A stretch of DNA of 63,621 nucleotides, counting the filler, from Neoconidiobolus thromboides FSU 785 (lineage: Eukaryota; Fungi; Entomophthoromycota), in NCBI GenBank assembly GCA_025603075.1. It is 7 parts of 7 records of this genome, joined end to end, with 100 filler letters (N's around TTAATTAATTAA, not from the genome) between each part and the next. Parts side by side here need not be neighbours in the genome. Positions count along the whole stretch, not along the records: positions 28,525 to 59,012 come from MU626484.1; 6 more parts are not named here. One strand, written 5' to 3'. This document shows, in pieces, positions 2,832-56,990 of the stretch (position 1 is the first letter of the stretch; every line of letters starts with the position of its first letter). A model generated the notes under the pieces. It ran no database searches. It was not told the DNA's origin and saw only the letters and a list, made by a program, of their open reading frames with translations. A program made the translations under genes and the position numbers.

Positions 2832-2865
<34 letters not shown>

Positions 2866-29208: not shown

Positions 29209-29256
29209 TTTTTATGTTCGTCTTTTTTGAAATCTATGTTTTGATGATAGGTGTTT

Positions 29257-31709: not shown

Positions 31710-31801
31710 CTATACAAAACAGAGTCAATATTTTTATAAGAGATAAAGTTATTGCAACATTTAATAACCAGTAATTGATGTTTGCATTTAAGGTATTTCA
31801 A

Positions 31802-31911
31802 ATATAGGAGGATATATTTTTTATTTAAGAACTTTACCAACGATCTTTCCGCTTAGACACTCCTTAAAAAAATGGAAAGAATGATGAAATCAAAAAAACA
31901 TTGCCCCATAT
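31802..31911 (+). mobile_element. Diverged MITE copy
   Basis: Consensus match with more mismatches, ends CCCCATAT. Confidence 0.7.
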
Positions 31912-34416: not shown

Positions 34417-35195
34417 ATGATCGAAATTCGTGAATTTATAACTCAAAAAGACTGTACTTTATTCCATTTACTTAGAGGATTTTATTAGCTATAAAGTATA
34501 AGGTAAGTCGTCAACTATATTCTAACTACTGGTTAGTTATTTTTTGGGGGCATAAATTGATCAGAATTTTGTATTTATTGAGGATCATAAAAATCCCTAA
34601 AGCATAAAGTAACTTTAGTTAACTTTTATTAATTTGTCTTTAACTATTATTAACTCTCTTTTTTAAGGATAACATGTAAATTATCAAATTTAATGGAGAG
34701 GCTATAGTTAAAGAATCTATAGAGTTTCATGACTATCTTGGCGGGAGATATCCTCGGAACTCATTATTTCTAAATGGTTAAAGTTTAATAAATTATTTAT
34801 TGGAAAATGCTCCCACCTTTTCTCGATCAACTAGTTTAGGAGCTAATGAGCTTATAAACAATCACGATAAGGATTGAGTTAGAGATCAATGAACCAGTAT
34901 CAGATCAAATTTTGTTAGACGTTTAGAACAGTTGGTCCTTCTTAGAAGCCATATTTTAAGCAATATTGAAACATTTTTCCTATCATTTCGTGAAACATTA
35001 GTTCAAATTAAGTTTTTAGGGAGCGACAATGTAACGTATGTGGATCACGTACTTTTAGACACCTTAAAGCTTTTCAAGAATTTTCAGTTACTACTTTTGA
35101 TACTATCGTTATAAACTATCAAAATCCTTTTTTTAAAACCAGTTTAATACAATTGATAATCTCTATGATCAGTTTGCTACTTCTTTAGACCTTAG
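34417..35195 (+). pseudogene. Decayed glutathione S-transferase paralog
   Basis: MIEIREF...FIPFT*RILLAIKYK (Trp TGG to TAG), DYLGGRYPRNSLFLNG*, FLGSDNVTYVDHV and NTIDNLYDQFATS, with frameshifts. Confidence 0.75.
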
Positions 35196-35669
35196 CTTTA
35201 TAAATTGAAATTAGAATTGTTATAAGAGTTAGATTTACTATTAATTAACTTCTTATTAAGTTTAATACTGTATGCACACTAAAACTAAAAACTTTAAAAT
35301 TTTAAGATCACTGATCAAAATAAAAAGTAAATAAAGAAATAGCTGAATACAAAATATTAACAGTTTTCAATTTTTGAATAGTGAATTACTTAGTTTATAA
35401 AAAACCGTACTGATTGTTTCAACTACATCTATACTTATCGAAATATTGAGACAATTGGGTTATTTAAATTGAATGAGCCATTAGATAAAACAAATAACAT
35501 TAGACAAACCTTTGACCCCAGTTAAGTAAATGTTAGAAAGTATAATAAGATAGTATAACCTTTTAAGTAGATCTAGATCAAACATTGTATTTATCAACTT
35601 GTAAAATACTGCCATTGAATTAACCATATACATAAGTTAACAAGTTTGAAGAATAAACTATTGATTAGC

Positions 35670-35776
35670 ATATGGGGATGTTTTTTTTGGTTTCATTACT
35701 TTTTCCATTTTTTAAGCGCTATTTGAGCAGAAAGATTGTTAGTAAAGTTCTTAGACAAAAAAATACATCCCCATAT
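35670..35776 (-). mobile_element. ~105-bp MITE copy
   Basis: Consensus match with intact termini. Confidence 0.85.
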
Positions 35777-36333
35777 ACTGATGATGATATTAGTTATACT
35801 CCAACCCAACAAAGTTAACTTTATGAACAAAGCATTTATCGAACTTAAAGTAATTTAAGAGAATTTTGATATTGAACTCAAGGTTGCTTTGACAAGCCAC
35901 TTTAGTTCAACAGCATGATGTTCAAGGTTAGTTTCCAACTCATAGTTAACAATAAAATTTATTTAAACATGACTAAATGTTTGATCGTAACATTAAGTTT
36001 GTAATTAAAGTATTAGATGATAGATATTATAAACTATTCGAAATACAAATTAAAAGATAATTGAATAAAAAAGAGTTTGTTTAAAAAGAGTTTATTTAAA
36101 AAGGAGATAGAAGAAGAAGAAAACCTCCTAAATATACTTAATCAGTTAAGTATATTTAAATAGAGGAGTATGACTTAACTTAGCAATTAAACACATTAGC
36201 CAAAGGTATAATAGGTAAATGAGATTACTGGAGAGACGTTCCCTGAAGCTTAATACCATCACAAATAGATATCAAATTAGGTTTTATTGTATAGACCATA
36301 CCTAAAAATTTGTGAGCCTAAATAGGAATCAAC

Positions 36334-36439
36334 GTATGGGGATGTTTTTTTAGTTTAACTACTTTTTCCACTTTTTAAGCACTAATTAAATGGAAAGGCT
36401 ATTGATAAAATTATTAAACACAAAAACTCATCTCCATAT
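36334..36439 (-). mobile_element. Diverged MITE copy
   Basis: Consensus match. Confidence 0.75.
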
Positions 36440-36477
36440 TTATTCTGAAAGATTGAGAAGCTACTAGATGATTTAGT

Positions 36478-36941
36478 TGTGAAATCTGGTACTCAGGGTT
36501 TGGAGTCAAGAACAGCTATTGCTGGGTTGACTACACTATAAGTCGAAAGGTCTTAGTTTATGTGACTAAGATAGACTTGGGCTATGAGGAATAGCACGTA
36601 ATAGGTTACAAGCTATATAAGACAAATATAATAGACAATATTAATGTAAAACCCATGTAAAATACTATTAAGAAAACTTAGTGGCTTTATCAAATGTTCG
36701 AGATATCAGGGAATAATTCAGTTAAAAAGCCTCGAACTACTATACTCTGTAAACTCTTTTGTACTCTGAAAAGTATAAATATCAAAATGAGAGGATAATA
36801 TTCTTTTGGATTGAGCTAGAAATTCTCATAACAAATCAAAATAAGAACATGGGATTGATTTCCTCTGAGCTCGAGAACACAACAGCTTAGGCGATTTTTA
36901 TGTTATAATTAACCATGGGACTGACAAAGCGATATTTCACA
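36478..36941 (+). mobile_element. 464-bp solo-LTR-like element
   Basis: TGTGAAAT...ATTTCACA (TG..CA, 8-bp terminal inverted repeat); colinear with 38297-38760; no ORF. Confidence 0.75.
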
Positions 36942-38074
36942 TAATCAAATTTTGCAACCAACCTTGTCAATTAAAGAAACATATTCTTATACACAAAAAT
37001 AATGAAAGAGGTTTTAAGAAAAATTATTGTTTATATACTTTTCCTCCTAAAGTTTATTTTTTGATAATGATGAAAACGCTTCCTATATGATTTAATTGCT
37101 TCTCCCTACCTCAAGTTTTATCTCAATAGAATGGAATATGAAATAGAAATCGAAAAATGGCCAATGTTATATTATTTTATTTTTATTGTAGTCTAATCCT
37201 GAACTGATTTAAGCATACTGTTTTATTTTGGTTTCAAATCAATTCAAATTTAGAAAATCTATTTGTTGGACTACCTAATAAAAAATAGGAAACTTTTAAA
37301 AAGCAAAGGGTTACTTATTTTAAAATTAATGTATTTTTGAACTTTAATCAATAAAGAGTTAAACTATAAAAAACAAAAACTATATTTTAAATATCTTAAA
37401 TAGAATAATGCTATTTGTGTAAATTAGCTTAAATAAAAAAGCCTTGAAGCTAATTTAAAATTTTAATAATTTTTTTACAGATTGTATAATAATTACATAT
37501 TATTTTTATGAATTAAAGTTTACTTTAGCTATATAGCTTAAAATATGTATCTGTCAGCTTTATTTAAGATTGTAATACTATATAAACAGTTGCTTTTACT
37601 TAAAGTATAATGTTTTGCTATACAATTTGAAGTTAAACTTTTTTTATATCCTTAACTTTTTTATTTTTTTAACTGTACCAAATAATACTTTAGCATAAAT
37701 ATTTACTTTTCTTACTTTGATACTATTATTAATGTAATTTTATACTTTATTAAATAACTTTTTTTATATTTTGCATATTTTAATAAGTTATCATAAATTT
37801 TTTTAATTTCCAACTTGCTAGAACTAATATAGATAACTAAAACCCAAGGACTAAATTTTGTTTTTTGGCTTTACTTTTATTATTAAGTATTTCTTTTACT
37901 AATTATTTAATTTTTGTTTAATTTAGTTTAAAATGTTTAAAATATAGTTTTTATTTTTTATAATTAATTAGAAGCCCAAGAAAATACTAGCTATCAAAAA
38001 TAAATTTAAAGATAAACAGTATTTAAATTTGTATAAAAAATCAAAAAGTTTGAAACAATTAGTAAAAAAACTAC

Positions 38075-38181
38075 ATATGGGGATGTATTTTTGTATTTAA
38101 GAATCTTACTGGCAAATTTTCCACTTAAATAGCACTTAAAAATTGGAAAAAATAATGAAGTCAAAAAAGACACTCTAATAT
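38075..38181 (+). mobile_element. MITE copy, abutting an inverted partner through a shared ATAT
   Basis: Consensus match. Confidence 0.85.
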
Positions 38182-38284
38182 GGAGATGATTTTTTTGATT
38201 TCATTACTTTTTCCACCTTTTAAGCGCTATTTAGGCGGAAAATTTGTTAGTAAAATTCTTAAACACAAAAATACATCCCCATAT
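38178..38284 (-). mobile_element. MITE copy
   Basis: Consensus match. Confidence 0.85.
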
Positions 38285-38296
38285 TTTAACTATAGC

Positions 38297-38760
38297 TGTG
38301 AGAACTGGTACTCACTGATTGGAGTCAAAAACAGCTATTGTCTGATTGACTACACTGTAAGTTGAAAAGTCTTAGTTTGTGTGACTAAGATAGACTTGAA
38401 TTATGAAGAATATTACGTAATAGGCTATATACTATGTAAGACAAATAGAATAGACAATGCTACTGTAAAATATACGTAAAGTACTATTAAGAAAATTTAG
38501 TGGCTTTATTAAACATATAAGATATCATGGAACAATTCAGTTAAAAAGCCTCGAGTTACTATATTCTAAAATCTCTTTCATACTCTAAGAAGTACGGATA
38601 ACAAAACAAGAGGATAACATTCTTTGGGATGAAGCTAGAAATTCCCATAGCAAATTAAACTAAGAGCATGGGATCAATTGTCTCTGAACTTAGGAACACA
38701 ACAACTTAAGTGGTTATTATGCTATAAGCAATCATGGAGCTGATAAAGCGATATTTCACA
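38297..38760 (+). mobile_element. 464-bp solo-LTR-like element, diverged copy
   Basis: TGTGAGAA...ATTTCACA; same length as and colinear with 36478-36941, roughly 75-80% identical by eye. Confidence 0.75.
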
Positions 38761-39101
38761 TAGTCAAGTATAACTATATTATATGTTTTTTATTTTTTAA
38801 TTAATTTATATTTCAAAGTTTGGTTTTAAAATATATTTAGAATACCTAAAGCCTAATTTTTTTTTCGAATTTTTATTTAATATAACCTAACTCTTTTTAT
38901 AAATATCTTTATCTATTATAAAAAAACCTAATAAGTTATTTAAGAAGTCAGGCTTTTAATTAAAAACTTTTCATTTTGATTAAAAGTATTATTTTTTGAA
39001 GGAAATTTGGCAAAATATTCAACTTTTAAAAATTTGTTAACTCTTCTTACCTTTATAATAATATCTCAAAAACAACTGGTCCAATCATTTTGAAACTTTG
39101 T

Positions 39102-39207
39102 AAATGGAGATGTATTTTTGCGTTCAAGAATTTTACTGATAATTTTTCCACTCAAATAGCGCTTAAAAAGTGGAAAAAGTAATGAAGCCAAAAAAACATC
39201 CCCAAAT
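39102..39207 (+). mobile_element. MITE copy
   Basis: Consensus match. Confidence 0.85.
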
Positions 39208-39274
39208 AATCTTTTTTATATCAATATATCAAATTTGTGCAAATTAAATCTTTTAATAATTAAAACTACTTATT

Positions 39275-39380
39275 ATATGGGGCTGTTTTTTTTAGTTTCA
39301 TTATTTTTCCATTTTTTAAGCGCTATTTATGTGGAAAAATTGTCAGTAAAATTCTTAAATACAAAAGTACATCCCCATAT
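39275..39380 (-). mobile_element. MITE copy
   Basis: Consensus match with intact termini. Confidence 0.85.
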
Positions 39381-40999
39381 AAACTTTTTTGATTTCCTTT
39401 GTAATAAGAATTGTAGAAAGTTCTCTAGAAATTCAAAATGTTAAAAATCAAATAAAATTAGAAAAAATATAGGTATATCGTTATTTTATTTTTCTGTTCA
39501 TATAAAATTTGTTTTTAGAAAACTAATGCTGTTTCTTTCTATATTATCATACAATATATACAATACAATAATAAAATTAAACCAACTTTTCACTAAATGA
39601 ACAATTTTACATATTATCAATCTATTTTGAAGATCGTGAAACTTATGATCATGTACTGGAGAGTTGACAACTAGAAGAGAAGTATAGCTAATGATATTGT
39701 AAGATTTACCTATTGATCGTTTATAATACATTGTATTTTCCTTTTCTGTTTATAACAAACAATTTTCTGATAAATTTTTATATCAACATAGTTCAAATTA
39801 GTAGATTTTGCAATCGAACAGTTTATTTGGCATGTATTGTAAATAAACTAAGGTTATAATAATAGTTTGTATTTTATTTTAAAATAAATTAAATTGGAAT
39901 ACTATTAGGGACTGTATTTTTATAAAAGAGCCCTTCATACTTTCATAACCAGAATAGCAGCATTAAATTTACGGCCAAAGGAATTTAATACATAGCTCAG
40001 ATCAAATAATAAAAAGCAAAAGTATCATACAATTACTTTTATTATCCCAAAAAAGAGGTGATAGTGAGACAAATGAGTCTCCCATTTTTCGACCCAAAGG
40101 AATATATATAGTACCAATAAATCTATAAGCGGCCTCCTTGTTGTTCATTTCATAAATTTCACATGTTACGAGTTTGTTTCTAGAGATACAAAAGCACAGG
40201 CTATATTGCCTTGAAGTTACAATAATATAATAACCAGATAATGAATATTATCTAAATCTTTTAAAAATAGTTTAAACTAATACGCTATCATCTTCTTATC
40301 TAATACCGTAAACTTGAAACAAATATTCTTTTGGATCAAAGTAACGTATTGGATTTTACTTGCTTTTAAAAGAAAATTGTTAAAATTCAATCATAGTTAA
40401 TGAGATGATTAATAAGTAAATTACTCTGTATACAAAGTAATAGAAAATAAGGCTAGATCAATCAGGTTAAACTTAATGTTGGGATGCTCTATGTGGATAA
40501 GTATAAAGTTACTTTTAAATAGATATCCAGGATTTATATGCTCGCTGTTTGTGCCTTTTATTATATACTTAATCTTAAGTATTTTTGGCTCTTGTGAACC
40601 ATTTAGTAATATTGCATTTTATAATGGATTTTAATATTTGAAGTGAAGTTTTATTTATATATCTGTTTTATATCAGCTTTAGAGTTTTATTTAGCAATTA
40701 ATATTTTATCAAACAAAAAAAAACTACTGGTGTAATAAAGCTTCCATGCTATTCTAATTAATGAAAAATATAAAGCGATATACCACTAGACCACAGTATT
40801 AGTAACATCTTGATTATTGAGCTATTTCAGTATTTTGAAAAGCACTTATAAATTAATGGTAAATAAATTATAAGCTAGCCTTATGAAATAATTTGATAAA
40901 TAAAAAAGCTGTAAATAACAATGAACAATAATATAGCCTTTATTTTTTAGATAAATAATAAATTGTTTTTAACATGATGCTTTATTTTCTAACTTCTTA

Positions 41000-41480
41000 T
41001 GAAAGAGGAATGTCGTTGAATAATTAGCTTGATACTCTCTATATCATTTTACTTCATATACTCCAGTACTTTGTTTATAGACCTGGATATCTAAAAGTCT
41101 CCTAATTTTCTAGTTTTTCACATCACCGACAACTTTCTTAAAATACGTAATTTCTTTTATATTAGATCTCTCTTTAACCTAATGTGTTAATCTTAGGAAA
41201 GGTCTTTAGATAATCCAACAAAATTTCACAATTCTAAAAATTGACTGTACTTCCGGCCCTTTCTTTATTGATCTTCTTTGTCTTCAAAATCTGTATAGAT
41301 TACTGTGGGCTTTAGAAACTGAATTCATAAGGTTTTGTCAACCTATACCTCCTAAAGAAAGAGATTTCTTAGGTGTTATTCCTATCTTATTGGATATGCC
41401 TTATTGAAGCATTAGTTCTTTAAGCTGAGTGACTTAGCTCTTGATTCTTTCTTAGCTAATCAAACAATCGAGTTTATCTC
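41000..41480 (-). pseudogene. Possible retrotransposon gag relic
   Basis: Stop-riddled reading frame containing SCR*CEKLEN*ETF, which resembles a decayed CCHC knuckle; coding-like GC. Weak. Confidence 0.25.
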
Positions 41481-41699
41481 TATGGAAAGTAGAAAAACCT
41501 TCATTTATTGTAATTTTTTAATTTGTCCATACCATTGTATAGATCAATACAATTTATAAAGTCAATTAATCCACTATCAATAAATTTGAAAAATTTAGAA
41601 AAGGCCTAATTGTATTATAAATTAAGGATTATTCTTCAATTTAGATATAAAACAAATTAAAAGACAAAAACAATTCTACTAAATAAACCTTTATTAGCT

Positions 41700-42059
41700 C
41701 TAAACCATTTTCTGTAAATCAGGACATTCCCCTTTACAATAATTAGCACCTTTTGAAGCACAGCATTTTTGCATATTGCTATTACCCCAAGAGCAGTTAT
41801 GCATAAGCTCATTGAAATGAACCATACTAGCACCCTTGAAAGTTTCCCAACAGCAATCCTTAGTTGTTTGATACCAAATCATATTATCGTGTCCATAACA
41901 GAAGGTACGATCATTCATAAACTTCCAAAATAAAGCTTCGCCACCGGAATAAATTAAGTTCCCTGCTGCATCGTAAGCATCTCGTTTCTCTAACTTACTG
42001 TCTTGTGGTAATGCTGAGGCTAAGGTAATGATAGAGAGGAATCCCAATGTGAATTTCAT
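41700..42059 (-). CDS. Small secreted cysteine-rich protein (119 aa, 8 Cys, Kex2 site)
   Basis: MKFTLGFLSIITLASA signal peptide, LEKR Kex2 site, C-CC-C-CC-C-C pattern; TATA-like TATAAATA ~120 bp upstream. Confidence 0.85.
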   Translation of the reverse strand: MKFTLGFLSIITLASALPQDSKLEKRDAYDAAGNLIYSGGEALFWKFMNDRTFCYGHDNMIWYQTTKDCCWETFKGASMVHFNELMHNCSWGNSNMQKCCASKGANYCKGECPDLQKMV

Positions 42060-42799
42060 GATGATTATAGTATATTAAAGTGATTTAGCAAATTTCTAGT
42101 CAATAGAAATGGGTTGGATTGGCTATGAATAGATTTCAAATCTAAATTATTTGAATTGTTTTCGCATGAATCGCTTGTATTTATACTTTCATATTGTCAG
42201 CTTAGATAAACTATGTTATGTTACCATGTGAAATAATGGTGTCTCGCAAATTGATATATAGCTTTTAATATAATATTCCTCTATGATTTTTATAGAACCT
42301 TTTGGAGTCCTATAATTAGTAATTTCATACTCAAATTTTGTTAGACTTTAATACGTTTTAATTAATTGGTAAACTAATAACATTAATTCTAGTATTGAAT
42401 TTTTTTAAATCTCGATGAGAGAATCCTTTGGAATTTATTTGAAAAGTCATATTAGAAAAGCGTAGAATAGCTGAAGGCTGTTGTTATTAGTTAAAACATA
42501 CTTTTCCATTTTTGAAGGATGTACAACCTCCATTCTACTATAAGTATCCTTTTAGGACTAAAGAAACTCTTTGTATTATTGTTCTTGTATAAATAACTAG
42601 GTATTAATCGACAAATGTTATTCGCGAAGATTGACCTAAATAGCTCGATACTAAAACCAATGAAATATGTTAAAAAGTCATTAATTTAATCCAGTATTTA
42701 TATATAGTAATGTTTGAGTCTCCTATCATTACCCGAGATCTAAGTTTTAATAATAATAATACTAATAAATATTTCATAAATTAATTCGCGAACTTGAGT

Positions 42800-43965
42800 A
42801 ATATTTACAAAAATCCAATTGACCCAAAAGGGTCAATTAAAACTGCCTTATATTATCAAAATAGTATAATATATATTCTCTAATTAACAAATATATAGCT
42901 TAAGGCCTAAAGATTACTTTAGAAACATTCAATTACATTTTTATATATTAAAAGCAAAAATTGTTTTATAGCCTTAACTATTTCAAACGTTTTTAAAAAT
43001 TATTTTAGTTGTAATATAATGAATAAATTATTAAATAATATAAAAAGGTGACTAAGTACTTGAAAGTTTACTTCATACTTGTTTTACTAACAAATAGTAT
43101 ATTAAAAACCTGATTATTAATTTAAAGCCACCAATGATATTTTAGCAGAAATTGTATTGACGTTTTTGAATCAATAGCTAGATTATTTGTGTACTATATT
43201 AAAATAAAATAGCCATCTTTCAAAAAAATTAGTTTCATTTTAACTTAATAAACATCTCATAAAAGAATATAAAACAAGAGCTATTAAATATTTAAGATTT
43301 TACTTTATGTTTTATTAATACTTTACAATACATTAAAGAGTTGGTTCTTGTTTTAAAAGCATTATTGGGTTTTGTAAAAGTAATGATAGGTTTTTTAGTA
43401 AAACCTAGCTTCTTAACATCATAAACAATATAAGACATTGGGGGTATTTTTTAGTTATTATCCTTCTTTGCTATTTTTTAAAGTTTAGAAATCAACTGAC
43501 TAATGTGACTATTTAAACTTGGATGTTGTGCTAACTATTCATTTTAATAGATATTAAATTAACAGGCCTCAATTAGCATATAGAACAATAGTTATAAAAT
43601 TCATCGTTCACCAGTGCGTATTCAAGTCTAAACAGCTACATTAGTCAGTTGATTTCTAAACTTTAAAAAATAGCAAAGAAGGATAATAACTAAAAAACAT
43701 TCACATAAAAAACAGTACTTAAGGTATTTAACGATCTTTGTTCTATATTAGTTGATAAAATACTGATTAAGCTATAATAAAATTAGCTGCTTCTTAAAAG
43801 TAACTTTGATTTTTTTTCAACACAGTGTTAATTATTTTAAGATAAAAATATAATTAAATGTCATTAGAACACTTTTTAGATCTTAATATGTATATTATTT
43901 CATTTTAAATAAAATAAAGCAGATTCAATTGACCCTTTTGGGTTGATTTTAAAAACATATATTAA
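42800..43965. mobile_element. Degenerate ~1.15-kb non-autonomous TIR element
   Basis: Arms of ~60-70 bp at ~42817-42885 and ~43880-43948 are inverted homologs; each contains the palindrome AATTGACCC-AAAA-GGGTCAATT or a variant. Confidence 0.5.
43436..43707. mobile_element. Foldback element with perfect 60-bp inverted arms
   Basis: 43447-43506 is the exact reverse complement of 43638-43697; outer ends resemble the GGGG-type MITE terminus. Confidence 0.75.
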
Positions 43966-44400
43966 TTAAAATAATTTAACTAACACTACAATAAATTTGA
44001 TAAATTCAAAAACTTGCCAAAAGCAGGTTTTTCTAGCCTTAATTATAGTCAAGATTAAAATTGAGAAAAATAAAATAACAATCGATTTTGATTCCTATAT
44101 TTAAAGCTTGAAAAAATCAATAGTAGAATGAGATATAGTTTAAAATAAATTTATCTTGATGTTTAGAAAGCGAAACGTAAAAATTTTTTAAGCACTTGGT
44201 TACATTTTGAGCTTCCCATATTTAAATTTATTTAATTATTGGGATGGACTCACATTGTTTATAGAAAATTGTAATTACAATTAAATTTTGTAAGCCTCAA
44301 TTTATAAAATACTAAGTGATTTAAATTAGGAAAAAAAGAATTTAGTAAAAATTGTATTTAATAAAAGATATAAAACAACCCTAATAGCCGTTTCCCCTCT

Positions 44401-45231
44401 TTACTTTGATAAATGCTTTGAGAAGAAGTCAGCAGTTAATTTTATAACATCATTAACTCTTTTACAATTATGTTCATCAGTAAAATCCCCACGAGTAGCA
44501 GCAAAACCATGCACATTATCAGTAAAATCATGCATTTCAGATTCCTTTAATAATTCTGGTTTGATCAAGTTAAAGTAATGCATCTAAAATAAATTAAACA
44601 ATATTGAAAAAATTATATGACGAGTATTACGATTTCACGTTCTTCTTTGGTAGGAGCAAATAATATTGGTTGGTTGATTGCCTCAAAGGACTCTTTGACA
44701 ATAAAGGAAGGATGAATGGCAACACCTGCTTTGAAAATAGGAACTTGAAGTTTAAGAGCATCAAACACTATTTTGCCTCCCCAACAAAAACCAACAACAC
44801 CTACGTTTGGCGCTTTTCTATCGATGTTTAAATGATCATAGATAAGTAAAATATCCTCATGAATTTTATTATCAAATGAGTATTCAACAGTAGCCATATG
44901 AATTAGTTTGTCCATGCTGATATTGATTATTAGTTAGTAAACAAATCAGTACAAAAATAAACTACTTTTTAGTCGGCCAATCCTCCAAGGGCCAGGGCTT
45001 ATTTCTAAAAAAATCAGGAATAATGACATGATAACCAGCGGATGCCAAGATATCCCCAAATTGATAGGCATTGTTATGTTTACCAGCTAAATCATAAACA
45101 AGAAGAATCAATGGATCCTTTTCGTCTCCAATAGAATAATATTCTAAATCTTTGACAGTAAAAAAGCTCCCTTGAGGCTTATAGTTAGATTCAACTGGTT
45201 TTAGAGTACAGCAAGATTTGGAAAGATACAT
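44401..45231 (-). CDS. Dienelactone hydrolase family protein (AIM2-like), 3 exons
   Basis: SKSCCTL, LVYDLAG, VIIPDFFR, VGVVGFCWGGK, AIHPS and DNVHGFAATRGD. Confidence 0.9.
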
Positions 45232-46011
45232 TGTTTTTTAAACATTTTAACACTTCTTTTGGATATTTATATATTTTTCATTGGTGCTTGAATAATGCTT
45301 ACGTTTGCAGTGTGATCCAAACTCATATTATGTCATTGCTTAATTATAAACCATTACACACAGAGAATCACTTATTTTGATTAATAACATCTGTTTATAA
45401 TAACTGTATGTACATTAAGAGCATACTATTATCATTGCCTCTATTGATATATACAATTTTACAATTACTTATTAAGTGCATATATAGCTTCCATAACTCA
45501 ATGTCTTTTTGATTAGTAATTAAATTATAAAGTCAACGTAATCTAACTTTCATCATTTTTTATTCTAAACCAATTTCAAAATATCCTTATATTTGATATT
45601 AGCGCAGTTTTAGTTTATTTGTTAATTCAACAACCAGGATTTACTTAGAATGGTCTAGTTACAGTTGTTGCTACTCCTTTCTGACTGTTTAGTGGTATTT
45701 TTGTGAAAAATATTTATTTAGCTAATTCTTTAAGACCCAATTTTCATATTTTATTTAAAATTAAACATAATTTTTTTCTTTAAATGAACAGTTGATTATA
45801 TCGCAAAAAAGTTGCAACAACTGGGATGCTATTTTTTGCAATTGTAGCTCTATAACTTTTTTCATTTAGCAATAATATTAAATTGCATTTAAATAACTCT
45901 CAAAACAATAAATGAGACGAATATTCATCTTCGGTCTTATGATTGGTCTCAGAGCTATTTATAAAATTGATATCTGTCTTTAAATATATAGTAATAATTT
46001 TTTAAATGAAG

Positions 46012-46112
46012 CATAGGGGTGTACTTTTTTATTAAGAATTTTACTAACAATTTTTCCCCTCAAACAGTGCTTAAAAAATAGAAAAAGTAGAAATCAAAAA
46101 ACACTCTCATAT
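46012..46112 (+). mobile_element. MITE copy
   Basis: Consensus match. Confidence 0.8.
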
Positions 46113-46164
46113 GTTAAACTGTTAATACTAAATTTTATAATAAAATTATTTTATTTTGTTTTCA

Positions 46165-46230
46165 AAAAAAATCATAGTTAAAAAAATCATAAACAAAAAA
46201 ATCATAAACAAAAAAATCATAGATAAAAAA
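46165..46230. repeat. 15-bp tandem repeat x4
   Basis: AAAAAAATCATAGTT / AAAC / AAAC / AGAT units. Confidence 0.85.
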
Positions 46231-47132
46231 TAGTATTTAAATTAAAAATAATAATTTGCTTTATTTTTGCTTTTATTTTTATTTTTACTGCTGTAGACTT
46301 GCTCATAGAAAAAAGGAATTTATGCAATATCTAATAATAATTAATTTTGAATTTTTAAAACTAAAACAATAGTTGTAATTTTATATTTCATTAAAATATC
46401 GCTAAAACAGTTATTATATTTTCAAAAAAGAATTCTTGAAAGTTCAAAAGCCCAGTTGTTCTATTTAATATAGCAAGGAAGCATCATTAAAAAAAGTACT
46501 ACATTTCATTTACATCAAAAAAAACTTCAAATTCAATCCCTCTTGCCAACTATGATATAATCTTACCCGTCACTTTATAAAACCCAAAGCTGTCTGACCA
46601 AAATCTTTTAAAAAATTATCTAAATATGCTACTTTGGTTCACAATGGCCAGGTCATCAGACCTATTGTAACTTTTAGTTTGATCAAATGATTTGATTAAA
46701 TAAGAATGACTATTTTTTCGAAAACTTTCGAAAATGGTTAATTTAGTTGGATTGAATTTCGTGGGAAAATTAGCATCCTTGCATTAAGGTTCTTATCAGG
46801 GATAACGAATTGTTCAAAGTTTAAAATGAGACGAATACGATTTATATCCTATGATCAGCTAAACTAGATTAAGTCAGATATAAAAGAGACAGTATAGTGA
46901 TTTTAGAATCATCCAAATATAAATTAAATAATATAAAAATCAAATGATTATAATTATAATTAACTTGCATCTTACTATGCCCTTAGCATTCACATGGCTT
47001 ACTTTTCGATTTAATGCTTTTCTGTTCTGTTTTCGAAAATGATATAAATAGAAGCAGAAACATGCTTTAATTCTTAAGCTTTTATTAAAGTACAACATTT
47101 TTACAACTAATTATTTTTATATTTTAATCACT

Positions 47133-49358
47133 ATGCAAAAGAGTGCCATTCTAGTATCTTTTATCTTTGGCCTCCTCGGGGCTGTAGCAGGGGACAGTGT
47201 AAAGTTTAACAATATGAAAGACTATAAAAAAATAAATGAGAATGAAATTGTTTTCATTAGTAGAAATGAAAACAAGCTTAAGGTTACTTGGTTAGAAGAC
47301 TCTATTATTCGTGTACAAGCAGTTAAGAAAGGAAAAGATTTTGAAGAGTTACCACTACCAATTACTGTTGCTAAAGATTTCAAGACGCCCAAAATTCATT
47401 CTTATAACAATGGTAACTGGCATGAGATTCAAAACCAGGACTCTAAGCATACTTTAAGAGTGAACTATTATCCATTGAGATTACAACTTATTAAAGGAAA
47501 AGATACTATCTTTGAAGAGGCAGCACCACTTGAGTTAAACGATTTAGGTACTGTACAGCTATTAAAACAACGTGAAGATGAACAATTCTTTGGTGGTGGT
47601 ATGCAAAATGGAAGATTTACTCACCGTAATACCAAATTAAATATTACAGTAGACTACAATTGGGATGATGGAGGTAACCCAAATCCATCACCATTCTATA
47701 TGTCCTCTAAAGGTTATGGCGTATTTAGAAATACATTCACTCCAGGGTATTATGATTTTAATTCACCTCTAAATTTAACTCACGTTGAAGATCGATTTGA
47801 TGCTTATTATTTTATTGGTGATTATAAGCAAGTTTTGAATAGATATACTTATCTAACTGGTAGACCCTTTATGCCACCAATTTATGGTTTGGAATTAGGA
47901 GACTCGGATTGCTATTCTAAGACTGCTAATGGTAGACCACCAAAAGATACATTAATCGATTCTACTAAAGTAGCTGATGGTTATGTACAAAATGACTTAC
48001 CTATTGGATGGATGCTAGTCAATGATGGTTATGGTTGTGGTTATACTCAACTAGATGAAACTAACCAAGCATTAGCTAAGAGAAATATTTCCTTAGGTTT
48101 ATGGACAGAATCTAACTTAACTAATCAACCAACAGAAGTAGGTAAATGGGGAGTAAGAGTAAGGAAATTAGATGTTGCTTGGGTGGGTGATGGTTATGAA
48201 TTTGGATTTAAAGCATGTAATGAAGCTTATAATGGTATCCAAGATTACTCTTCAGCACGTGGTTTTGTATGGCAAGTTGAAGGTTGGGCTGGAGTACAAA
48301 AATGTGCAGTACAATGGACAGGCGATCAAAGTGGAAGTTGGGAAAATATAAGATTCCATATCCCTACTATCCATGGATCAGGTTTATCAGCCCAAGTATA
48401 CACTGCTGGTGATGTAGATGGTATTTTCCGTGGTAGTGCAAACACCTATATTCGTGATTTACAATATAAAGTATTTACTCCAGTTTTTATGACTATGTCA
48501 GGATGGGCTAAATTTGATAAACAACCTTGGAGATATGGGGAACCTGGAACTTCTATAAATAGAAAATATTTAAAGTTACGTGAACAGTTATTGCCATACA
48601 TTTATACCTTAGCCCATGAAGCCCATGAAACTGGATTCCCTATTGTAAGATCTATGGTGTTAGAATATCCTAAAGATAAAAATACTTGGGATAAGGAAAC
48701 TACTAAATATCAATATATGTTTGGTTCCTCTTTCTTAGTAGCCCCTGTCTATAAAGATGAATTAAAGAGAGATGGCATTTATTTACCTGAAGGAAAATGG
48801 ATTGATTATTGGAATGGGAAAGTATATACTGGTCCTACTACCTTAAATGGATATAATGCCCCATTAGACACTTTACCCTTATTTGTTAAAGAAAATTCTA
48901 TCATTCCTATGTGGAATAAAGTTAATTCATACAGAGAGCGTAAACCAGATCATCCAATTATTTTAGATATTTATCCATCCGCCGGTAAATCGACCAAATA
49001 TACTTTATACGAAGATGATCTTGTTACTCGTCAGTTCCAAGACAAAAAATATAGCAAACAAGAGTTCTCACTTGAAGGTAAATACAATGGGTTTAAACTC
49101 AAGATTGGTGAAATCAAGGGTAGTTATGACGGAATTGCTACGGAAAGACCATATATTTTAGTTATACATACTACATCTGCTCCAAAGTCGGTTGAATTTA
49201 AGGGCGCTTCTAAATTGGAATCTAAACCCGTTACTGATAAGGCTGCTGATAACAAAGAGGGTTGGTATTATGATGCTAACGATCGCAGCGGAGCACTTTA
49301 TGTCTCAGTTGGTAAACTCAAGGCTAACCAAGAACTTGATGTCCAAATATCTTTATAA
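47133..49358 (+). CDS. Secreted GH31 glycoside hydrolase, alpha-N-acetylgalactosaminidase (Nag31)-like
   Basis: Signal peptide; FGGGMQNGRF, NWDDGG, LTGRPFMPP, GWMLVNDGYGCGY, KLDVAWVG, WTGDQ, GDVDGIF, YIRDLQYKVFTP, LLPYIYT, LVAPV, YLPEGKWIDYW and LPLFVK; intronless, 741 aa. Confidence 0.9.
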   Translation: MQKSAILVSFIFGLLGAVAGDSVKFNNMKDYKKINENEIVFISRNENKLKVTWLEDSIIRVQAVKKGKDFEELPLPITVAKDFKTPKIHSYNNGNWHEIQNQDSKHTLRVNYYPLRLQLIKGKDTIFEEAAPLELNDLGTVQLLKQREDEQFFGGGMQNGRFTHRNTKLNITVDYNWDDGGNPNPSPFYMSSKGYGVFRNTFTPGYYDFNSPLNLTHVEDRFDAYYFIGDYKQVLNRYTYLTGRPFMPPIYGLELGDSDCYSKTANGRPPKDTLIDSTKVADGYVQNDLPIGWMLVNDGYGCGYTQLDETNQALAKRNISLGLWTESNLTNQPTEVGKWGVRVRKLDVAWVGDGYEFGFKACNEAYNGIQDYSSARGFVWQVEGWAGVQKCAVQWTGDQSGSWENIRFHIPTIHGSGLSAQVYTAGDVDGIFRGSANTYIRDLQYKVFTPVFMTMSGWAKFDKQPWRYGEPGTSINRKYLKLREQLLPYIYTLAHEAHETGFPIVRSMVLEYPKDKNTWDKETTKYQYMFGSSFLVAPVYKDELKRDGIYLPEGKWIDYWNGKVYTGPTTLNGYNAPLDTLPLFVKENSIIPMWNKVNSYRERKPDHPIILDIYPSAGKSTKYTLYEDDLVTRQFQDKKYSKQEFSLEGKYNGFKLKIGEIKGSYDGIATERPYILVIHTTSAPKSVEFKGASKLESKPVTDKAADNKEGWYYDANDRSGALYVSVGKLKANQELDVQISL

Positions 49359-49712
49359 TAGTTTTGGTATTATTTTATTAAATAAAATTAATGTTTATGA
49401 CTTTTATTAAGTTTACTTAATATAAAATACAAAAAAGTATTTAAATATAAAGTTAAAAAAGCATTGGACTATGAGAAGCAGCTTATTTTAAAAAATTTTA
49501 GATATTCAAACTATAATAATGAGGTATTTTTATAAACATTAAAATTAAAGCACTAATTGTCATGAAATTCTATAGAAAAACAAGAAAATACAACATACGT
49601 TCGGATAACATCATTTCAATAAGTTTTAACATTATTTATTTCAATAATTAAGTTTTAGTAATTTACAAAAACCACCAAAATATTAAAGCCGCTATTAATT
49701 AACTTTTAACTC

Positions 49713-50444
49713 TTAATATCTGCTACAATCAATCACATAATCATCATCACACTTCTCCCCTGCTGCAAAATTCTGAGTCCAGTATAGGTCCTTCTCACCC
49801 CATCCAAAGCACTCAAACTCACCAATGATATTCTTATAATGTCCCTCTGATTTCTTCCATGCTTGTACTACCTTTTCAACGTTTTTTTGATTCCAAGCTA
49901 CGTTTTCTGCTCCAGTGTAAGCTCTGAAGCCTTCATTTTTAATACGATCAAAAAAGAATTTTACTTTGGTGCCATCATGAGACATCTTCTTATGCTCAGC
50001 TTGATCTTCACTGTGCTTTTGAGATGATTTCATTAAACGTGAGTCCAACTTCAATGGCTTTTTGCTTACTTCTGAACGTATCTTGTTTACTAAGCATAAC
50101 ATTTCAGCGCTCCTTTCATCAGGCTGATCACTTGGATTGTTTCCAGTTGGCTGGGATTGGGATGAGGTTTCAGTTGGCTTAGGTTGAGAGGAACTCATAG
50201 TAGATTTCTTAGCTGGTTCGGAATGAGTAGTTACCGACTTGGATTTATCGGTACATTTATAAATGGTGGTTTCAGCAATGTTTGTAACTGTTTTAGTAGC
50301 TAAATATTTGGTGATATAAACGGATTTGGTTACAGTAACTGCATCAGTGACACCTGATTTAGCAGAACCAGTAATAGCTTCACCAGTAACTAAGCTGATG
50401 ACTTGGAGAGTAAATAAAGATAATAAAGGATTATAAAATTTCAT
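49713..50444 (-). CDS. Secreted CAP (SCP/PR-1) domain protein with Thr/Ser-rich linker
   Basis: Signal peptide, LVNKIR, SQKHSEDQ, MSHDG, AENVA, WKKSEGHYKNI and YWTQNF. Confidence 0.9.
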   Translation of the reverse strand: MKFYNPLLSLFTLQVISLVTGEAITGSAKSGVTDAVTVTKSVYITKYLATKTVTNIAETTIYKCTDKSKSVTTHSEPAKKSTMSSSQPKPTETSSQSQPTGNNPSDQPDERSAEMLCLVNKIRSEVSKKPLKLDSRLMKSSQKHSEDQAEHKKMSHDGTKVKFFFDRIKNEGFRAYTGAENVAWNQKNVEKVVQAWKKSEGHYKNIIGEFECFGWGEKDLYWTQNFAAGEKCDDDYVIDCSRY

Positions 50445-52370
50445 AATTAATATTAGATAAGTTAATGTTATTAAAATTGGATATCATTTGTATTCTATTT
50501 ATACTTTGATTTTCCAGTAGATTCTTATGTTTTTTGTAAAGTAGAATGCTAGTCACACATATATTATAACTTAATTAGTTTATTAAACTGTTAGATAATA
50601 ACTAATGATTTTAATAGCTGATTATGCAGCTATAAATCATTCTACTTCGCACGATTAGAACATAATAAATAAAACTATAACTACAACTATATCCTATTTC
50701 AATACGAAGTATAATATACATTCTACTATATACCCAACTTTTAAAGCATTAGTTCTCTCTATAACCTCATTTCTAACACAATAGAAATAAAAAGTTTTAA
50801 CGCTAAAGCATATAAATAATATCTTTACTTTATCCTTCATTAATATGAAATATGTATTTATTCTAAAAAGCCTGACCCTAATACACTAGTTCGCTTTACT
50901 GAGATCATAAGCCGTTTTCGATAAAAATTCCAAACTCTAATCTAAATAAAAGTTAATGAACAAGTACCCAGTAATGTCAATTATCTCACAAAACATTATC
51001 TTAAAATCGTACCAAATTAATTTCTAGGTTTTAAGCCTAGTTTATCCTATTTCCATTAAATTAATAAAATGGCTGAAGCTAGTTAAATGCCAACCTAAAA
51101 GCTTTAATGAAACTTGTAATATTTTACAATACACTTGAAGTCACGATAATTTACACATACCCTTTATATCATATATTATGGTACCATAACACACAATTTG
51201 TAAACACACCTTTATATTTTAGGTTGGACTATTCGCAATGTAAAATGATATAGTTTTTGCTAGATTTAAATTAAAAAATAAGAATTACCCTCATCATAAT
51301 ATCACATTATTATAAAATCCAAACAATTTTGATATTGAATTTTGACAATACTAATCTTTAAGCTGAGAATGTGTTATTTTGATAGACATTGGTTGTTTGA
51401 TTTAAAACTTTGGATAGTAGTTTATGTAATTTTTATTAGCGTTTATCGTTTTGTTAGCGATAAAGAATATGTATAAAATTTTAATATTTGTTACTGTTTT
51501 GTGAGTTGCTTTAAAAGTTGGATGTTTTTTAATCTTACAGGTTGCCTTGAAACCCCCTTGTGGAAATAATGTTTATATTTACTTTAATAAGATGTATTGT
51601 TGTAACTAATAAATCACTTAAGGACCTATGGTCTTCCAAGAATTTAGTAAGTATCACTACGAAAAATGGCTTTCGGACATAATACATACTTAATCTTCCG
51701 TTTTCAAATTTTGGGCTTTAATTATAGCTGTAAAATTTTCTTTAGTAGATATTAGTAAATTCTGCTGGTTAATATGGAATATTCTTTTTATGAATATATT
51801 AATATTTTTATTGAATTATATTGCTTATACCAAGGCTAAAATATTGACTTTAAGAAAATGAGTTCAAATATTTGACCCTGTACCCTGAAATACTTTATTT
51901 TCATAACATTTCTAGTAGTGTATCAATTGACAATAAACACAGGAATTACACATGTTGCAGAATACCTAATAATAGCAGAAAAATAGCTTTATTCAAGTTA
52001 ATAAGCTTATTAAATTTAAATTTTTCACAAACCATTATTAAATTAACAGCACTGAATTTTGCAAAAGTCTGTAGATTACTAAAAAAAAGGGTAATTCATG
52101 CAATTTTCGATAAGACAGAAGCACAAATTACCTCAACAAATTAATTAAATTCATAAGGATATGGGGCAATAAAGTAGCTTTTATTTGCTCATAAGTATGG
52201 TATATTAAGAAAAGAGTCCTAGCTTACTAGTTAAAAACTATGTGATTGAACAAAAGCAGTCACAAAGAGTCCTAGGCTCAATTCGGAGCTATACCAGATA
52301 GCATAAATACCACCTTTACAGCCCTTTACATTTCAGAACTAAAACAATCTAAAGTTTAATTTACTTTATC

Positions 52371-53171
52371 ATGAAATTCCTCACATATCTCCTTCCATTA
52401 GTCGCCCTCTATGTTGCAGCTGAAAGTAATACTATTACTAACCAAATGGAGATAAAAGTAAAAGGCCGTTATAATAGACCAAATAATGGAAATCCAGATT
52501 ATAATAATCCTCAAACAGTAACAGCAATTAAGTATCAACCTGCAGGTTATGTTACTATAACAAAATTGGAAATCAAAACCCTTACAAAAACAGTAATGGT
52601 GGATCAGTGTACTAAAACTATTAGTGGTAGCAAACCTAGACCAACATAAGAGAAGCCTAAACTAACAGAAACGAAACTTAAGCCTGTCCCTACAGACTCT
52701 TATCCAAATAACATTTCTGAAAGAACTGTTGAGATGCTTTGCAGGGTAAACACTTTACGCAAAAAAGTTGGGAAGAAACCTGTAAAAGTGGACTTACGCC
52801 TAATGCAATCATCTCAAAAACACAGTGAAGATCAAGCCAGAAATAGACAAATGTCACATGATGGAATTAAGACCAAATTTTTCGGGGACCAAATTAGAGC
52901 AGAGGGATACAGAGCTTTAGCCGCTTCAGAAAATGTAGCATTTAATCAGCGATCCATTGTGTATGTTATGAATTCATGGAGAAAGTCATTAGGTCATTAT
53001 ATAAATATTATTGAGGATTTTGAGTGCCTTGGATGGGGTGAGAAGGACTTTTATTGGACCCAGAATTTTGCCTCAGGATCTGAGTGTACAGAGGCCACTC
53101 TCCCAAATTGTAAAGTTTACTCTTCATTTGATAGTCGCACTATGAGAACAGGGTATAGCTATGTACTTTAG
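52371..53171 (+). pseudogene. CAP domain paralog with one in-frame TAA (pseudogene or sequence error)
   Basis: ORFs 52371-52649 and 52734-53171 are in the same frame, linked by 28 sense codons after TAA at 52647-52649; the CAP domain closely matches 49713-50444. Confidence 0.75.
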
Positions 53172-55148: not shown

Positions 55149-56990
55149 TTAAAATAAGTTATGAACTAACTGAGAAAGGGAATCCTTATTATATAAGATA
55201 TACTTTGAAGGGTTCTTTGAAAAATCAGTTGAGATAAAGCGTTCTTGGTTTCTAGAATAAATTGGTAACAAAATCTTCAAAATTTGATCAATTAATTTTT
55301 GCTTTAATTCAGGATCACTGATAGTATAAGCCTTATGTTGTTTGACAATTTCTTCTATATTCTGATTGAAATTTTTGAATTTGTCTTTGATATTACTACG
55401 CTCGCTACTACTTAGACTCGAGTTAGAATTCAAATTAATTCGTGTTAAATTGGTATCAGTTAAGCATTCTAAACAAGATTTCCAAGATTCATGATACTGA
55501 TCCATTGAGCGTTTCAATGTCTTTTCCATAAATTGTAATTTATTTTCATGGATATATTTATTCAAATTATTCACATTCAATGACTTTTGAAGATAAAAAA
55601 TATTATTCATCAGAAAAATTGCCCTTAAAGTAGAGTTCTTATAGCCCTTAGATTTTGCTTCAACGTATTGCAAAAGAGAATCCATAACATTGGTGAAATA
55701 CTTCATGCTCAGAGTTTCATATTCATAATTGTCTTCCGTCTTTACGCAAGAATGAGCTCTCCCCAACGTCTTGAGATTACTTTCTACAGTATTTGGATAT
55801 TCTAAAATTCTCTTTATGAAATTCAATGCACTGGAAGCCATCTCATGAACAGTACCATCTTGAGATAGAGTAGTTTGGTTTTTAATTCCTCCACGAATAT
55901 CCTCCAAAAACGCGGGTAAAGATTTCATTAATGTCTTTGTTATATTTTGAATCAAATCTTGGAAATTGTTTTCATTTAACCCAGCTTTAGAATAAATACC
56001 TAAAATATCATTCTGATAAAACAGTAAATTTTCTAATATATCATATAATAAAAAGATTTCATTATGTAAATCTTTTTTGGCATAAGCAAAAAGTTGTTCT
56101 CCAGTTTCAACGTATTTACTTAAGCTAGTATTAATGCTTTCACCATACTCATTGCTAAACTCGCCAGATTTAAGTAATCTTTTCAAATTCATCTCTTCTT
56201 GTTGTAATAAATTAATCAGATCTCGTGTATATGGAATATAAGGGCATGTTCCTTTTTGATAAGTAGATCCTTGACTAACTTGCTCTTTTGAACTAGGATT
56301 ACACTTTCTGATATGTGACTGCATACAATCCAACAGCAATTTATTACGCGACTCAGATAAAACTCTCAACAAGTTCCCACTTTGTTTTAAATTTAAGTCG
56401 ATTTCTACCTTGTTTGTATACTCAATAATTTCCAACAACTGACTTAAACTATCCTCTTTAATGTCTAATATTTGCTCAAAGGACTCGCCTTCAACCATCT
56501 GGCTTTGATCCTGTAATATATTTTTGAAACTTTGTAACAAATGTTGTAAAACTGCTTTGAGCACTTGGTTGACTTGTCCCTGTGCCTTTATGGAATGTTT
56601 CAGTTTGCTTTTCTCTAAATAGGACCTAGCTTCTCGCATACTATCGACTGCTTTCAAATAAGATTTCAAATCTTGTTTTGGACCTGCTAATAAAATTGGT
56701 TCTTGTTGTTGAGCTATATCCATTTGCTGTATAGTACTCGTTAAACTATGAACTGTTACTTCTACATTTTCATTAAATCTTTTCAACTTTTGAGTAAGCT
56801 CATGTATTGGCAATATACTTGTCTCTAGCTTGGTCAATCTATCGTCAAAGTTTCCCAACATTTGGTAAGCCTTTATACTCTTTTCATTGTTCAATTTTAA
56901 GTGGCTTTTCAATGTCTCTAATTGATTGGTCTCTTGTTCGATTTTATATGCTAGCTCTCGGTTAGTTTGAAATAAATTGCTGTTCTCCAT
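55149..56990 (-). CDS. EXO70: Exocyst subunit Exo70
   Basis: N-terminal coiled coil (DDRLTKLETSILPIH), DGTVHEM, IFLMNNI, IKDKFKNFN and YTISDPELK...YSR. Confidence 0.93.
   Translation of the reverse strand: MENSNLFQTNRELAYKIEQETNQLETLKSHLKLNNEKSIKAYQMLGNFDDRLTKLETSILPIHELTQKLKRFNENVEVTVHSLTSTIQQMDIAQQQEPILLAGPKQDLKSYLKAVDSMREARSYLEKSKLKHSIKAQGQVNQVLKAVLQHLLQSFKNILQDQSQMVEGESFEQILDIKEDSLSQLLEIIEYTNKVEIDLNLKQSGNLLRVLSESRNKLLLDCMQSHIRKCNPSSKEQVSQGSTYQKGTCPYIPYTRDLINLLQQEEMNLKRLLKSGEFSNEYGESINTSLSKYVETGEQLFAYAKKDLHNEIFLLYDILENLLFYQNDILGIYSKAGLNENNFQDLIQNITKTLMKSLPAFLEDIRGGIKNQTTLSQDGTVHEMASSALNFIKRILEYPNTVESNLKTLGRAHSCVKTEDNYEYETLSMKYFTNVMDSLLQYVEAKSKGYKNSTLRAIFLMNNIFYLQKSLNVNNLNKYIHENKLQFMEKTLKRSMDQYHESWKSCLECLTDTNLTRINLNSNSSLSSSERSNIKDKFKNFNQNIEEIVKQHKAYTISDPELKQKLIDQILKILLPIYSRNQERFISTDFSKNPSKYILYNKDSLSQLVHNLF

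Follow-up and report, generated by a model that had tools for sequence, protein, structure and literature searches.

A predicted secreted Nag31-type alpha-N-acetylgalactosaminidase in an early-diverging fungus and its probable ancient bacterial origin

Does a bacterial-looking glycoside hydrolase gene in an early-diverging fungus encode an ordinary member of its family, and how did it come to be there? The question is raised by a GH31 gene at positions 47133-49358 (+) of a 63,621-nucleotide stretch of Neoconidiobolus thromboides FSU 785 (GenBank assembly GCA_025603075.1), here called the window. The gene lies in the 30.5-kb contig that fills positions 28525-59012 (MU626484.1). A sequence-only reading of this DNA had proposed a secreted, bacterial-type alpha-N-acetylgalactosaminidase (alpha-GalNAcase) that this fungus acquired horizontally and uses on host mucins. 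The best explanation of the whole, to which we assign a probability of roughly two in three, is a secreted Nag31-type alpha-GalNAcase whose gene passed from a bacterium to fungi in one ancient transfer and was then inherited vertically, with losses. Sequence and fold comparisons lend good support to the open reading frame (ORF) as a Nag31-type (GH31 subfamily 18-like) enzyme gene with a product secreted by prediction, where the subfamily is assigned by closeness to PDB and Foldseek matches rather than by CAZy's own subfamily model. No paper that describes a fungal enzyme of the Nag31 GH31 group came up in a literature search, and the gene appears to represent an undescribed fungal branch of a known enzyme kind.

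The ORF extends from an ATG start over 741 amino acids without introns. All motifs listed in the sequence-only reading were found in it, namely GWMLVNDGYGCGY at residue 292, KLDVAWVG at 345, WTGDQ at 395, GDVDGIF at 426 and GWYYDANDRSG at 710, and a search of the ORF for WIDMNE found none, as that reading had stated. Pfam recognizes four GH31 modules in the protein. The best sequence matches in the PDB are the four entries of EfNag31A, the GH31 alpha-GalNAcase of Enterococcus faecalis (E 2e-119), and the next subfamily is that of FjDex31A, a dextranase (E 1e-66). An AlphaFold model built from a 51-sequence alignment reached a predicted local distance difference test (pLDDT) score of 92.8 and a predicted template modeling score (pTM) of 0.93. 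Its top four Foldseek matches are again all EfNag31A (template modeling score, TM, 0.90; 3e-75), and FjDex31A follows at 1.5e-61. The earlier assignment to the Nag31 type is thus upheld by both sequence and predicted fold.

The predicted active site agrees with this placement. Asp347 aligns with the EfNag31A residue that is changed in PDB 7F7R (D455N) and 7F7Q (D455A), and all 12 fungal rows have it, as do 129 of the 131 other Nag31-like rows, the remaining two being gaps. Asp398 lies 51 residues past the predicted nucleophile. Its EfNag31A equivalent lies 53 past (D455 to D508, chain numbering, where D508 is presumably the name of the acid/base residue), and alignment gaps account for the two-residue difference. 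Asp398 is kept in 130/131 Nag31-like rows. Across 136 diverse non-fungal relatives, the window protein retains 66 of the 67 columns conserved at 93% or more, including N297-D298-G299-Y300, K345, D347, R376, W385, W395, D398 and D427; the only lost column is G588N, within a C-terminal sandwich. Two cysteines, C260 and C302, were considered as a fungal novelty and rejected, as an alignment of fungal and bacterial sequences together shows them conserved at 90% or more.

Sixteen residues before the acid/base residue, Val382 occupies a column that holds leucine or valine in 113/131 Nag31-like rows and arginine in 2/5 distant GH31 rows. Spacing, rather than superposition on a ligand complex, suggests that this column corresponds to the canonical GH31 substrate-binding arginine. 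EfNag31A requires a hydrophobic pocket at that position for the methyl group of N-acetylgalactosamine (GalNAc) (PMC9491548), and a valine in a leucine/valine column fits such a pocket. The characterized GH31_18 members are all alpha-GalNAcases (PMC13096917). Judged on sequence and model together, alpha-GalNAcase activity is predicted for the ORF, and we regard it as likely. In the mechanism we propose, the signal peptide would export a retaining exo-glycosidase from the cell. Within the (beta/alpha)8 barrel, Asp347 would attack the anomeric carbon and Asp398 would serve as acid/base, while a hydrophobic pocket, with Val382 replacing the usual GH31 arginine, would admit the 2-acetamido group. 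The product would be terminal alpha-GalNAc, most likely released from Ser/Thr-linked Tn-type O-glycans on glycoproteins.

Export is predicted from the N-terminus, MQKSAILVSFIFGLLGAVAG followed by DS. Its start is basic, its core hydrophobic (mean Kyte-Doolittle 2.3), and the residues at -3 and -1 are small; in alignments it falls on the signal peptides of homologs from bacteria as well as fungi. This call, which agrees with the earlier one, draws on composition, homolog alignment and the model rather than on a dedicated predictor. The public gene model (P0001, 714 amino acids) begins at Met28 and so is without the signal peptide (window 47133-47214). Transcript coverage from 47097 and the alignment of homolog N-termini favor Met1 over Met28 as the start.

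Contigs from sequencing runs were placed on window positions 46300-51000, with the RNA run taken from the same organism. Its contigs 47097-47942 and 47927-49329 show no differences from the genome and no joints, and RNA contigs end at 49329-49365. No RNA coverage was found on the intergenic flanks, including 46300-47084, where the DNA run is even. Because the RNA contigs are joint-free and confined to the gene body, the gene is intronless and transcribed, with Met1 inside the transcript. Against transcripts from related organisms, 38 of the 40 differences with the best support are synonymous, indicating strong purifying selection. The ORF is a genuine transcribed fungal gene, co-linear with the genome. 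Separately, loose read ends at 48192-48235 lead to a second contig in runs X2 and X3 that matches for 44 nt only and continues as YKLDGTWVGP. This contig occurs in DNA and RNA runs, at a higher RNA word depth (69 vs 13-17), and represents a paralogous, expressed Nag31-type gene of the same organism. N. thromboides P0002 and C. coronatus P0004 have a KLDGTWVGP motif as well.

The origin of the gene can be approached through its relatives. The nearest proteins are fungal, namely a Neoconidiobolus thromboides protein (62%) and a pair of Conidiobolus coronatus copies that share a contig (64% and 56%). Bacillaceae follow at 52-55%, interleaved with chytrids (Podochytrium, Rhizoclosmatium, Siphonaria, Chytriomyces, Obelidium) and Calcarisporiella, and then Actinomycetota at 45-50%. 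When searched as a profile, the fungal sequences brought in Polychytrium alone; a second Chytriomyces copy came from a cluster look-up. About 12 fungal sequences stand at or above 901 bits, the score of the weakest listed match in the profile search, all from Entomophthorales, Calcarisporiella, Chytridiales and Polychytrium, which makes for a patchy spread over the kingdom among the matches listed. In bacteria the family is far more abundant: 205 confirmed stretches occur in species-representative bacterial and archaeal genomes, and among thousands of protein matches the named ones are nearly all bacterial.

An IQ-TREE analysis (69 rows, 691 columns, LG+C20) recovered the 12 fungal sequences as one clade (100/99) across three phyla, comprising Conidiobolus, Neoconidiobolus, Calcarisporiella, six Chytridiales sequences and Polychytrium. 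Within it, Chytridiomycota (97/88) stand apart from Entomophthorales (100/99) plus Calcarisporiella (90/50), and the window gene pairs as sister with that of N. thromboides (100/100). This branching agrees with the species tree, as vertical descent predicts. Bacillaceae and Actinomycetota join the fungal clade at 100/100; in this larger group the maximum-likelihood (ML) tree places Bacillaceae at the base and the fungi as sister to the Actinomycetota set (91/83, 94/75). A broad, vertically inherited fungal clade, which the sequence-only reading had named as an outcome that would refute its proposal, is therefore found in part.

Comparison with known systems sharpens the picture. The window protein matches the four-domain core of EfNag31A (PDB 6M76, 6M77, 7F7Q, 7F7R) at TM 0.90, and the two have in common K-x-D-V-A-W-V-G, W-T-G-D-Q, the N-D-G-Y-G-x-G-Y loop and a G-W-A-G-x-Q segment. 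EfNag31A, however, is longer, anchored to the cell wall by LPXTG and furnished with extra modules, whereas the window protein is a bare 741-residue core with a predicted eukaryotic signal peptide. The two appear to belong to different halves of the family as read from an overview tree that lacked a row for EfNag31A itself. Outside the fungi, the closest relatives are GH31 proteins of Bacillaceae and Actinomycetota that bear NPCBM or F5/8-type-C modules (Virgibacillus, Lentibacillus, Scopulibacillus, Kribbella, Streptomyces). They are 47-55% identical over the whole core and carry the C-terminal EGWYYD..DR.G motif of the window protein, so the C-terminal motif is of bacterial style, as first described. 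Most of these homologs extend 250-480 residues further at the C-terminus, with carbohydrate-binding modules absent from the fungal proteins, which stop exactly where NPCBM, CBM32-type and associated modules begin in the bacterial ones. A few Streptomyces and Nocardia forms are as short as the fungal proteins.

The fungal orthologs, labeled only as GH31 or hypothetical proteins, come from N. thromboides, C. coronatus (two copies), Calcarisporiella thermophila, Rhizoclosmatium, Obelidium, Siphonaria, Podochytrium, Chytriomyces hyalinus (two copies) and Polychytrium. They share clade, length, domain set and catalytic residues with the window protein and differ from it in identity (44-64%) and, in some cases, by having introns. 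The chytrid and C. coronatus "b" copies have lost the C-terminal GWYYD motif that the window protein keeps, and the N. thromboides ortholog and C. coronatus "b" have asparagine at D429. In C. coronatus KQ964531.1 the Nag31-type genes lie at 2737-4586 (-) and 10001-12178 (+), 5.4 kb apart on opposite strands; being mutual closest relatives (100/99), they point to a lineage-specific duplication. The gene model of copy "a" is without the distal C-terminal domain.

Age can be judged from gene structure and composition. The Rhizoclosmatium and Calcarisporiella orthologs sit in scaffolds of 0.9-1.2 Mb among ordinary eukaryotic genes. Their gene spans exceed the coding length, and the Calcarisporiella gene matches in four pieces with three gaps of about 63-65 nt. 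Neoconidiobolus and Conidiobolus orthologs are intronless, like the window gene. GC content at third codon positions (GC3) is 0.23 in the GH31 ORF vs 0.28-0.34 in its neighbors, and relative synonymous codon usage (RSCU) correlates with that of the neighbors at r 0.90; GC3 in actinobacterial homologs is near 0.98. Host-like codon usage without a compositional anomaly is consistent with an old, ameliorated gene. Together, a fungal clade over three phyla, introns in orthologs and host codon usage indicate an ancient transfer followed by vertical inheritance. Acquisition by this fungus itself, as originally supposed, does not fit these data. We propose that a gene from a soil bacterium related to present Bacillaceae or Actinomycetota enzymes would have entered an early fungal ancestor once. 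It would then have lost the bacterial carbohydrate-binding modules and gained eukaryotic expression signals, host codon usage and, in some lineages, introns. Vertical passage with many losses would have followed, with survival chiefly in fungi that use arthropods or arthropod remains as a habitat.

Several points weigh against this account. The nesting of fungi inside bacteria, expected by the sequence-only reading and present in the ML tree, carries moderate support (91/83, 94/75). When the 38 close bacterial rows were held together with the fungi as sister, the approximately unbiased (AU) test did not reject the arrangement (p 0.23), leaving moderate support for strict nesting and for any particular donor lineage. 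The outgroup includes many rows without a taxon name, and several named rows are eukaryotic. Vertical descent requires many losses, including all Dikarya, and the absence from other fungi is read from ranked match lists. On the enzyme side, the Foldseek structural alignment gives only 32% identity to EfNag31A, and a literature search found no characterized enzyme among the fungal clade or its nearest Bacillaceae and Actinomycetota relatives. One GH31_18 enzyme cuts p-nitrophenyl (pNP)-alpha-GalNAc and none of the native mucin or Tn substrates on which it was tried (PMC13096917). Both BACCAC_01242 of B. caccae and BT3169 of B. thetaiotaomicron are reported GH31 alpha-GalNAcases, and BT3169 is active on mucin and not on free Tn (PMC11992087). 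These two cases make the natural substrate less certain than the activity. Calcarisporiella, finally, has no stated arthropod link.

Ecology offers a guide to the substrate. Fungi of the Conidiobolus type live in association with arthropods, and most insect O-glycans are Tn and T antigens. Among chytrids, the carriers are Rhizoclosmatium globosum, Obelidium mucronatum, Chytriomyces hyalinus, Polychytrium aggregatum, Podochytrium sp. and Siphonaria sp.; exactly these chytrids have been singled out as chitinophilic colonists of arthropod exuviae, with Polychytrium the only such chitinophile outside Chytridiales (PMC12115818; bioRxiv 10.1101/2024.02.10.579206). That all chytrid carriers are exuviae chitinophiles makes arthropod O-glycoproteins a plausible substrate, with few independent lineages behind the correlation. 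From the distribution among taxa, glycoproteins of arthropod exuviae or cuticle look more like a nutritional substrate than the target of a weapon against hosts, so the earlier insect-mucin idea is partly rescued as an ancestral feeding trait. A more specific proposal, which we hold tentatively and consider doubtful as a joint claim, is that the bacterial alpha-GalNAcase gene entered before the split between chytrids and zygomycete-grade fungi and was kept almost only in arthropod-feeding lineages (Chytriomycetaceae and Polychytrium on exuviae, Conidiobolus-type Entomophthorales). As a hitherto unrecognized part of the arthropod-degrading toolkit of fungi, the enzyme would strip Tn-type O-GalNAc from cuticle-associated or mucin-like glycoproteins alongside chitinases.

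Among competing explanations, the one that survives best keeps fold and catalysis and changes the natural substrate. In place of mucin-type O-glycoproteins, the enzyme would act on microbial polymers that contain alpha-GalNAc (galactosaminogalactan- or Pel-like polysaccharides, teichoic acids) or on glycolipids, or its specificity would have shifted. Its nearest relatives in bacteria are soil and halophilic saprobes rather than gut mucin degraders, at least one GH31_18 enzyme is without a determined native substrate, the fungal proteins are without Gal/GalNAc-binding modules, and a GH123 gene (beta-GalNAc, glycolipid-type) adjoins the Scopulibacillus homolog. Characterized members nevertheless all remove alpha-GalNAc, those tested on proteins act on O-glycoproteins, the active-site columns are conserved, and the ecology of the carriers fits arthropod glycoproteins, which leaves another substrate unlikely. 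As to the bacterial neighborhoods themselves, the GH123 gene lies directly upstream in Scopulibacillus (L007 900-2795), and a GH84-type NAGidase with an F5/8-type-C (CBM32-type) module lies directly upstream in Haloactinopolyspora (L006 235-2733). The gene content of these two loci suggests degradation of N-acetylhexosamine (HexNAc) glycoconjugates and serves the main account as a hint to the substrate as well.

Less probable is a reversed direction, or an ancestral eukaryotic or opisthokont Nag31 gene that few lineages kept and that passed to soil bacteria. The AU result for fungi as sister to Bacillaceae plus Actinomycetota accommodates it, as do choanoflagellate, dinoflagellate and ichthyosporean homologs in neighboring clades. 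However, a single clade of the fungi and the Salpingoeca/Durusdinium group is rejected (AU test, p 5e-5), bacterial rows such as Pendulispora and Catenulispora separate the eukaryote groups, and the richness of the family in bacteria vastly exceeds its dozen or so fungal sequences. We therefore consider this direction improbable. The other eukaryotic genes belong to Salpingoeca helianthica (P0133), Durusdinium trenchii (P0144/P0158) and Amoebidium parasiticum (P0153), and their clades, apart from the fungal one, may reflect several independent entries into eukaryotes. BmNag31 of Bombyx mori, likewise reported as an alpha-GalNAcase, reportedly sets a precedent for the Nag31 subfamily in a eukaryote and is said to be of bacterial origin. 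Two further chytrid GH31 proteins, P0221 (Entophlyctis) and P0250 (Podochytrium), were considered as a second Nag31 lineage and set aside as probably members of another subfamily. They are long-branched and group with P0264 and P0267, and the relatives of P0267 are DUF4968, Flavobacterium-type GH31 proteins.

A recent transfer from a bacterium to this fungus or genus, as a host-mucin weapon, has little left to recommend it. It would suit a gene that is intronless here and in Neoconidiobolus and Conidiobolus, with a bacterial-like C-terminal motif, 52-55% identity to Bacillaceae and homologs on Bacillus plasmids. Yet the fungal clade covers three phyla and mirrors the species tree, introns occur in other fungal orthologs, codon usage is host-like, and the nearest relatives are fungal (62-64%) rather than bacterial; this reading is very improbable. 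The plasmids in question are large, NZ_CP155624.1 (Bacillus paramobilis) and NZ_CP036045.1 (Bacillus mycoides), and one of their homologs is labeled as a discoidin domain-containing protein. These plasmids show that the gene moves with mobile DNA in Bacillota.

Bacterial contamination of the assembly, for which a short contig, an intronless gene and close bacterial homologs could be cited, has a negligible probability given Exo70, CAP-Gly, CAP-family and intron-split genes on the same contig, 35% GC and fitting codon usage where the surroundings have 22-33% GC, and transcripts and several separately filed DNA runs that carry the gene, the X3 contigs spanning gene and flanks.

The ancient-transfer account has consequences for annotation and use. 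GH31 genes of early-diverging fungi are routinely labeled as starch alpha-glucosidases, and the present clade very probably differs from these and would encode a secreted alpha-GalNAcase. If the activity is true, the annotation of carbohydrate-active enzymes (CAZymes) for these fungi needs correction, and the clade provides a naturally secreted, module-free eukaryotic enzyme for Tn antigen removal. It would also offer a concrete case of an ancient bacterial gene kept in step with an arthropod-associated lifestyle, and a candidate factor for Conidiobolus-type fungi on insect, possibly mammalian mucosal, glycoproteins. Feature coordinates are collected in Table 1.

Table 1. Features of the GH31 locus, in window positions (aa, amino acids).
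Feature	Position	Strand	Basis
Candidate TATA box TATAAATA	47043..47050	+	Read directly; 47 nt upstream of first RNA-contig base 47097; putative function
Minimum 5' untranslated region (UTR)	47097..47132	+	Same-organism RNA contig begins at 47097, zero differences
Coding sequence (CDS), GH31 subfamily-18-like (Nag31-type) glycosidase, 741 aa	47133..49358	+	ORF, Pfam, RNA, model
Predicted signal peptide, aa 1-20	47133..47192	+	Hydrophobic helix aa 3-15, low pLDDT; homolog alignment; composition
N-terminal beta-sandwich, ~aa 21-230	47193..47822	+	Pfam Gal_mutarotas_2 aa 49-208; model all-beta to aa 228
Catalytic (beta/alpha)8 barrel, ~aa 231-500, with NDGYGCGY aa 297-304	47823..48632	+	Pfam Glyco_hydro_31_2nd, model secondary structure, conserved columns
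Asp347 codon, predicted nucleophile (KLD347VAWVG)	48171..48173	+	Aligns with EfNag31A D455
Val382 codon, putative canonical GH31 substrate-binding Arg position	48276..48278	+	Equivalence suggested by spacing
Asp398 codon, predicted general acid/base (WTGD398Q)	48324..48326	+	Alignment with EfNag31A
Proximal C-terminal beta-sandwich, aa 501-591	48633..48905	+	Pfam Glyco_hydro_31_3rd, E 1e-25
Distal C-terminal beta-sandwich, aa 608-741, closing with EGWYYDANDRSG motif	48954..49355	+	Pfam DUF5110
Candidate polyadenylation signal AATAAA	49381..49386	+	Read directly; 23 nt past stop codon; putative function

The surrounding contig is AT-rich (22-35% GC), and the GH31 ORF has 35% GC. The contig also carries Exo70 (55149-56990, -), a CAP-Gly protein, a bestrophin and two CAP-family genes. 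At 44401-45231 (-), a dienelactone-hydrolase (DLH) gene is split over three frames, implying two short introns, so the intron-bearing neighbor of the sequence-only reading is present. The GH31 gene was found in DNA runs labeled as three organisms from five separate studies, as well as in RNA runs, and run X3 supplies overlapping DNA contigs that cover the gene and its two flanks evenly. Linkage to Exo70 and the DLH gene, the runs and codon usage confirm the earlier view of a bacterial-type gene in a genuine fungal contig. Two other descriptions do not hold, as the "many repeats" amount to only eight short tandem arrays and the supposed accessory stretch also carries housekeeping genes, among them those for Exo70 and a CAP-Gly protein. 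Beyond the GH31 gene itself, no synteny of the window with Neoconidiobolus or Conidiobolus loci was found.

Upstream of the gene, 18 kb (28525-47000) are gene-poor, with 22-30% GC and gene fragments only: a glutathione S-transferase (GST) C-terminal domain at 33346-33735, a weak DUF5948 match at 41700-42059 and the DLH gene. Downstream, the CAP genes noted earlier are paralogs of the cysteine-rich secretory protein type at 49713-50444 (-) and 52734-53171 (+), 59% identical over 129 amino acids. The first has a signal-like N-terminus, a Ser/Thr-rich linker and RNA contig coverage, and the second is probably one exon of a longer gene. In run X3 (organism B), window positions 49765-50047 contain 157 diverged nt (49841-49999) and, at 50047, a joint to the opposite strand inside the CAP gene, which suggests a rearrangement or an inverted duplicate in the organism B strain.

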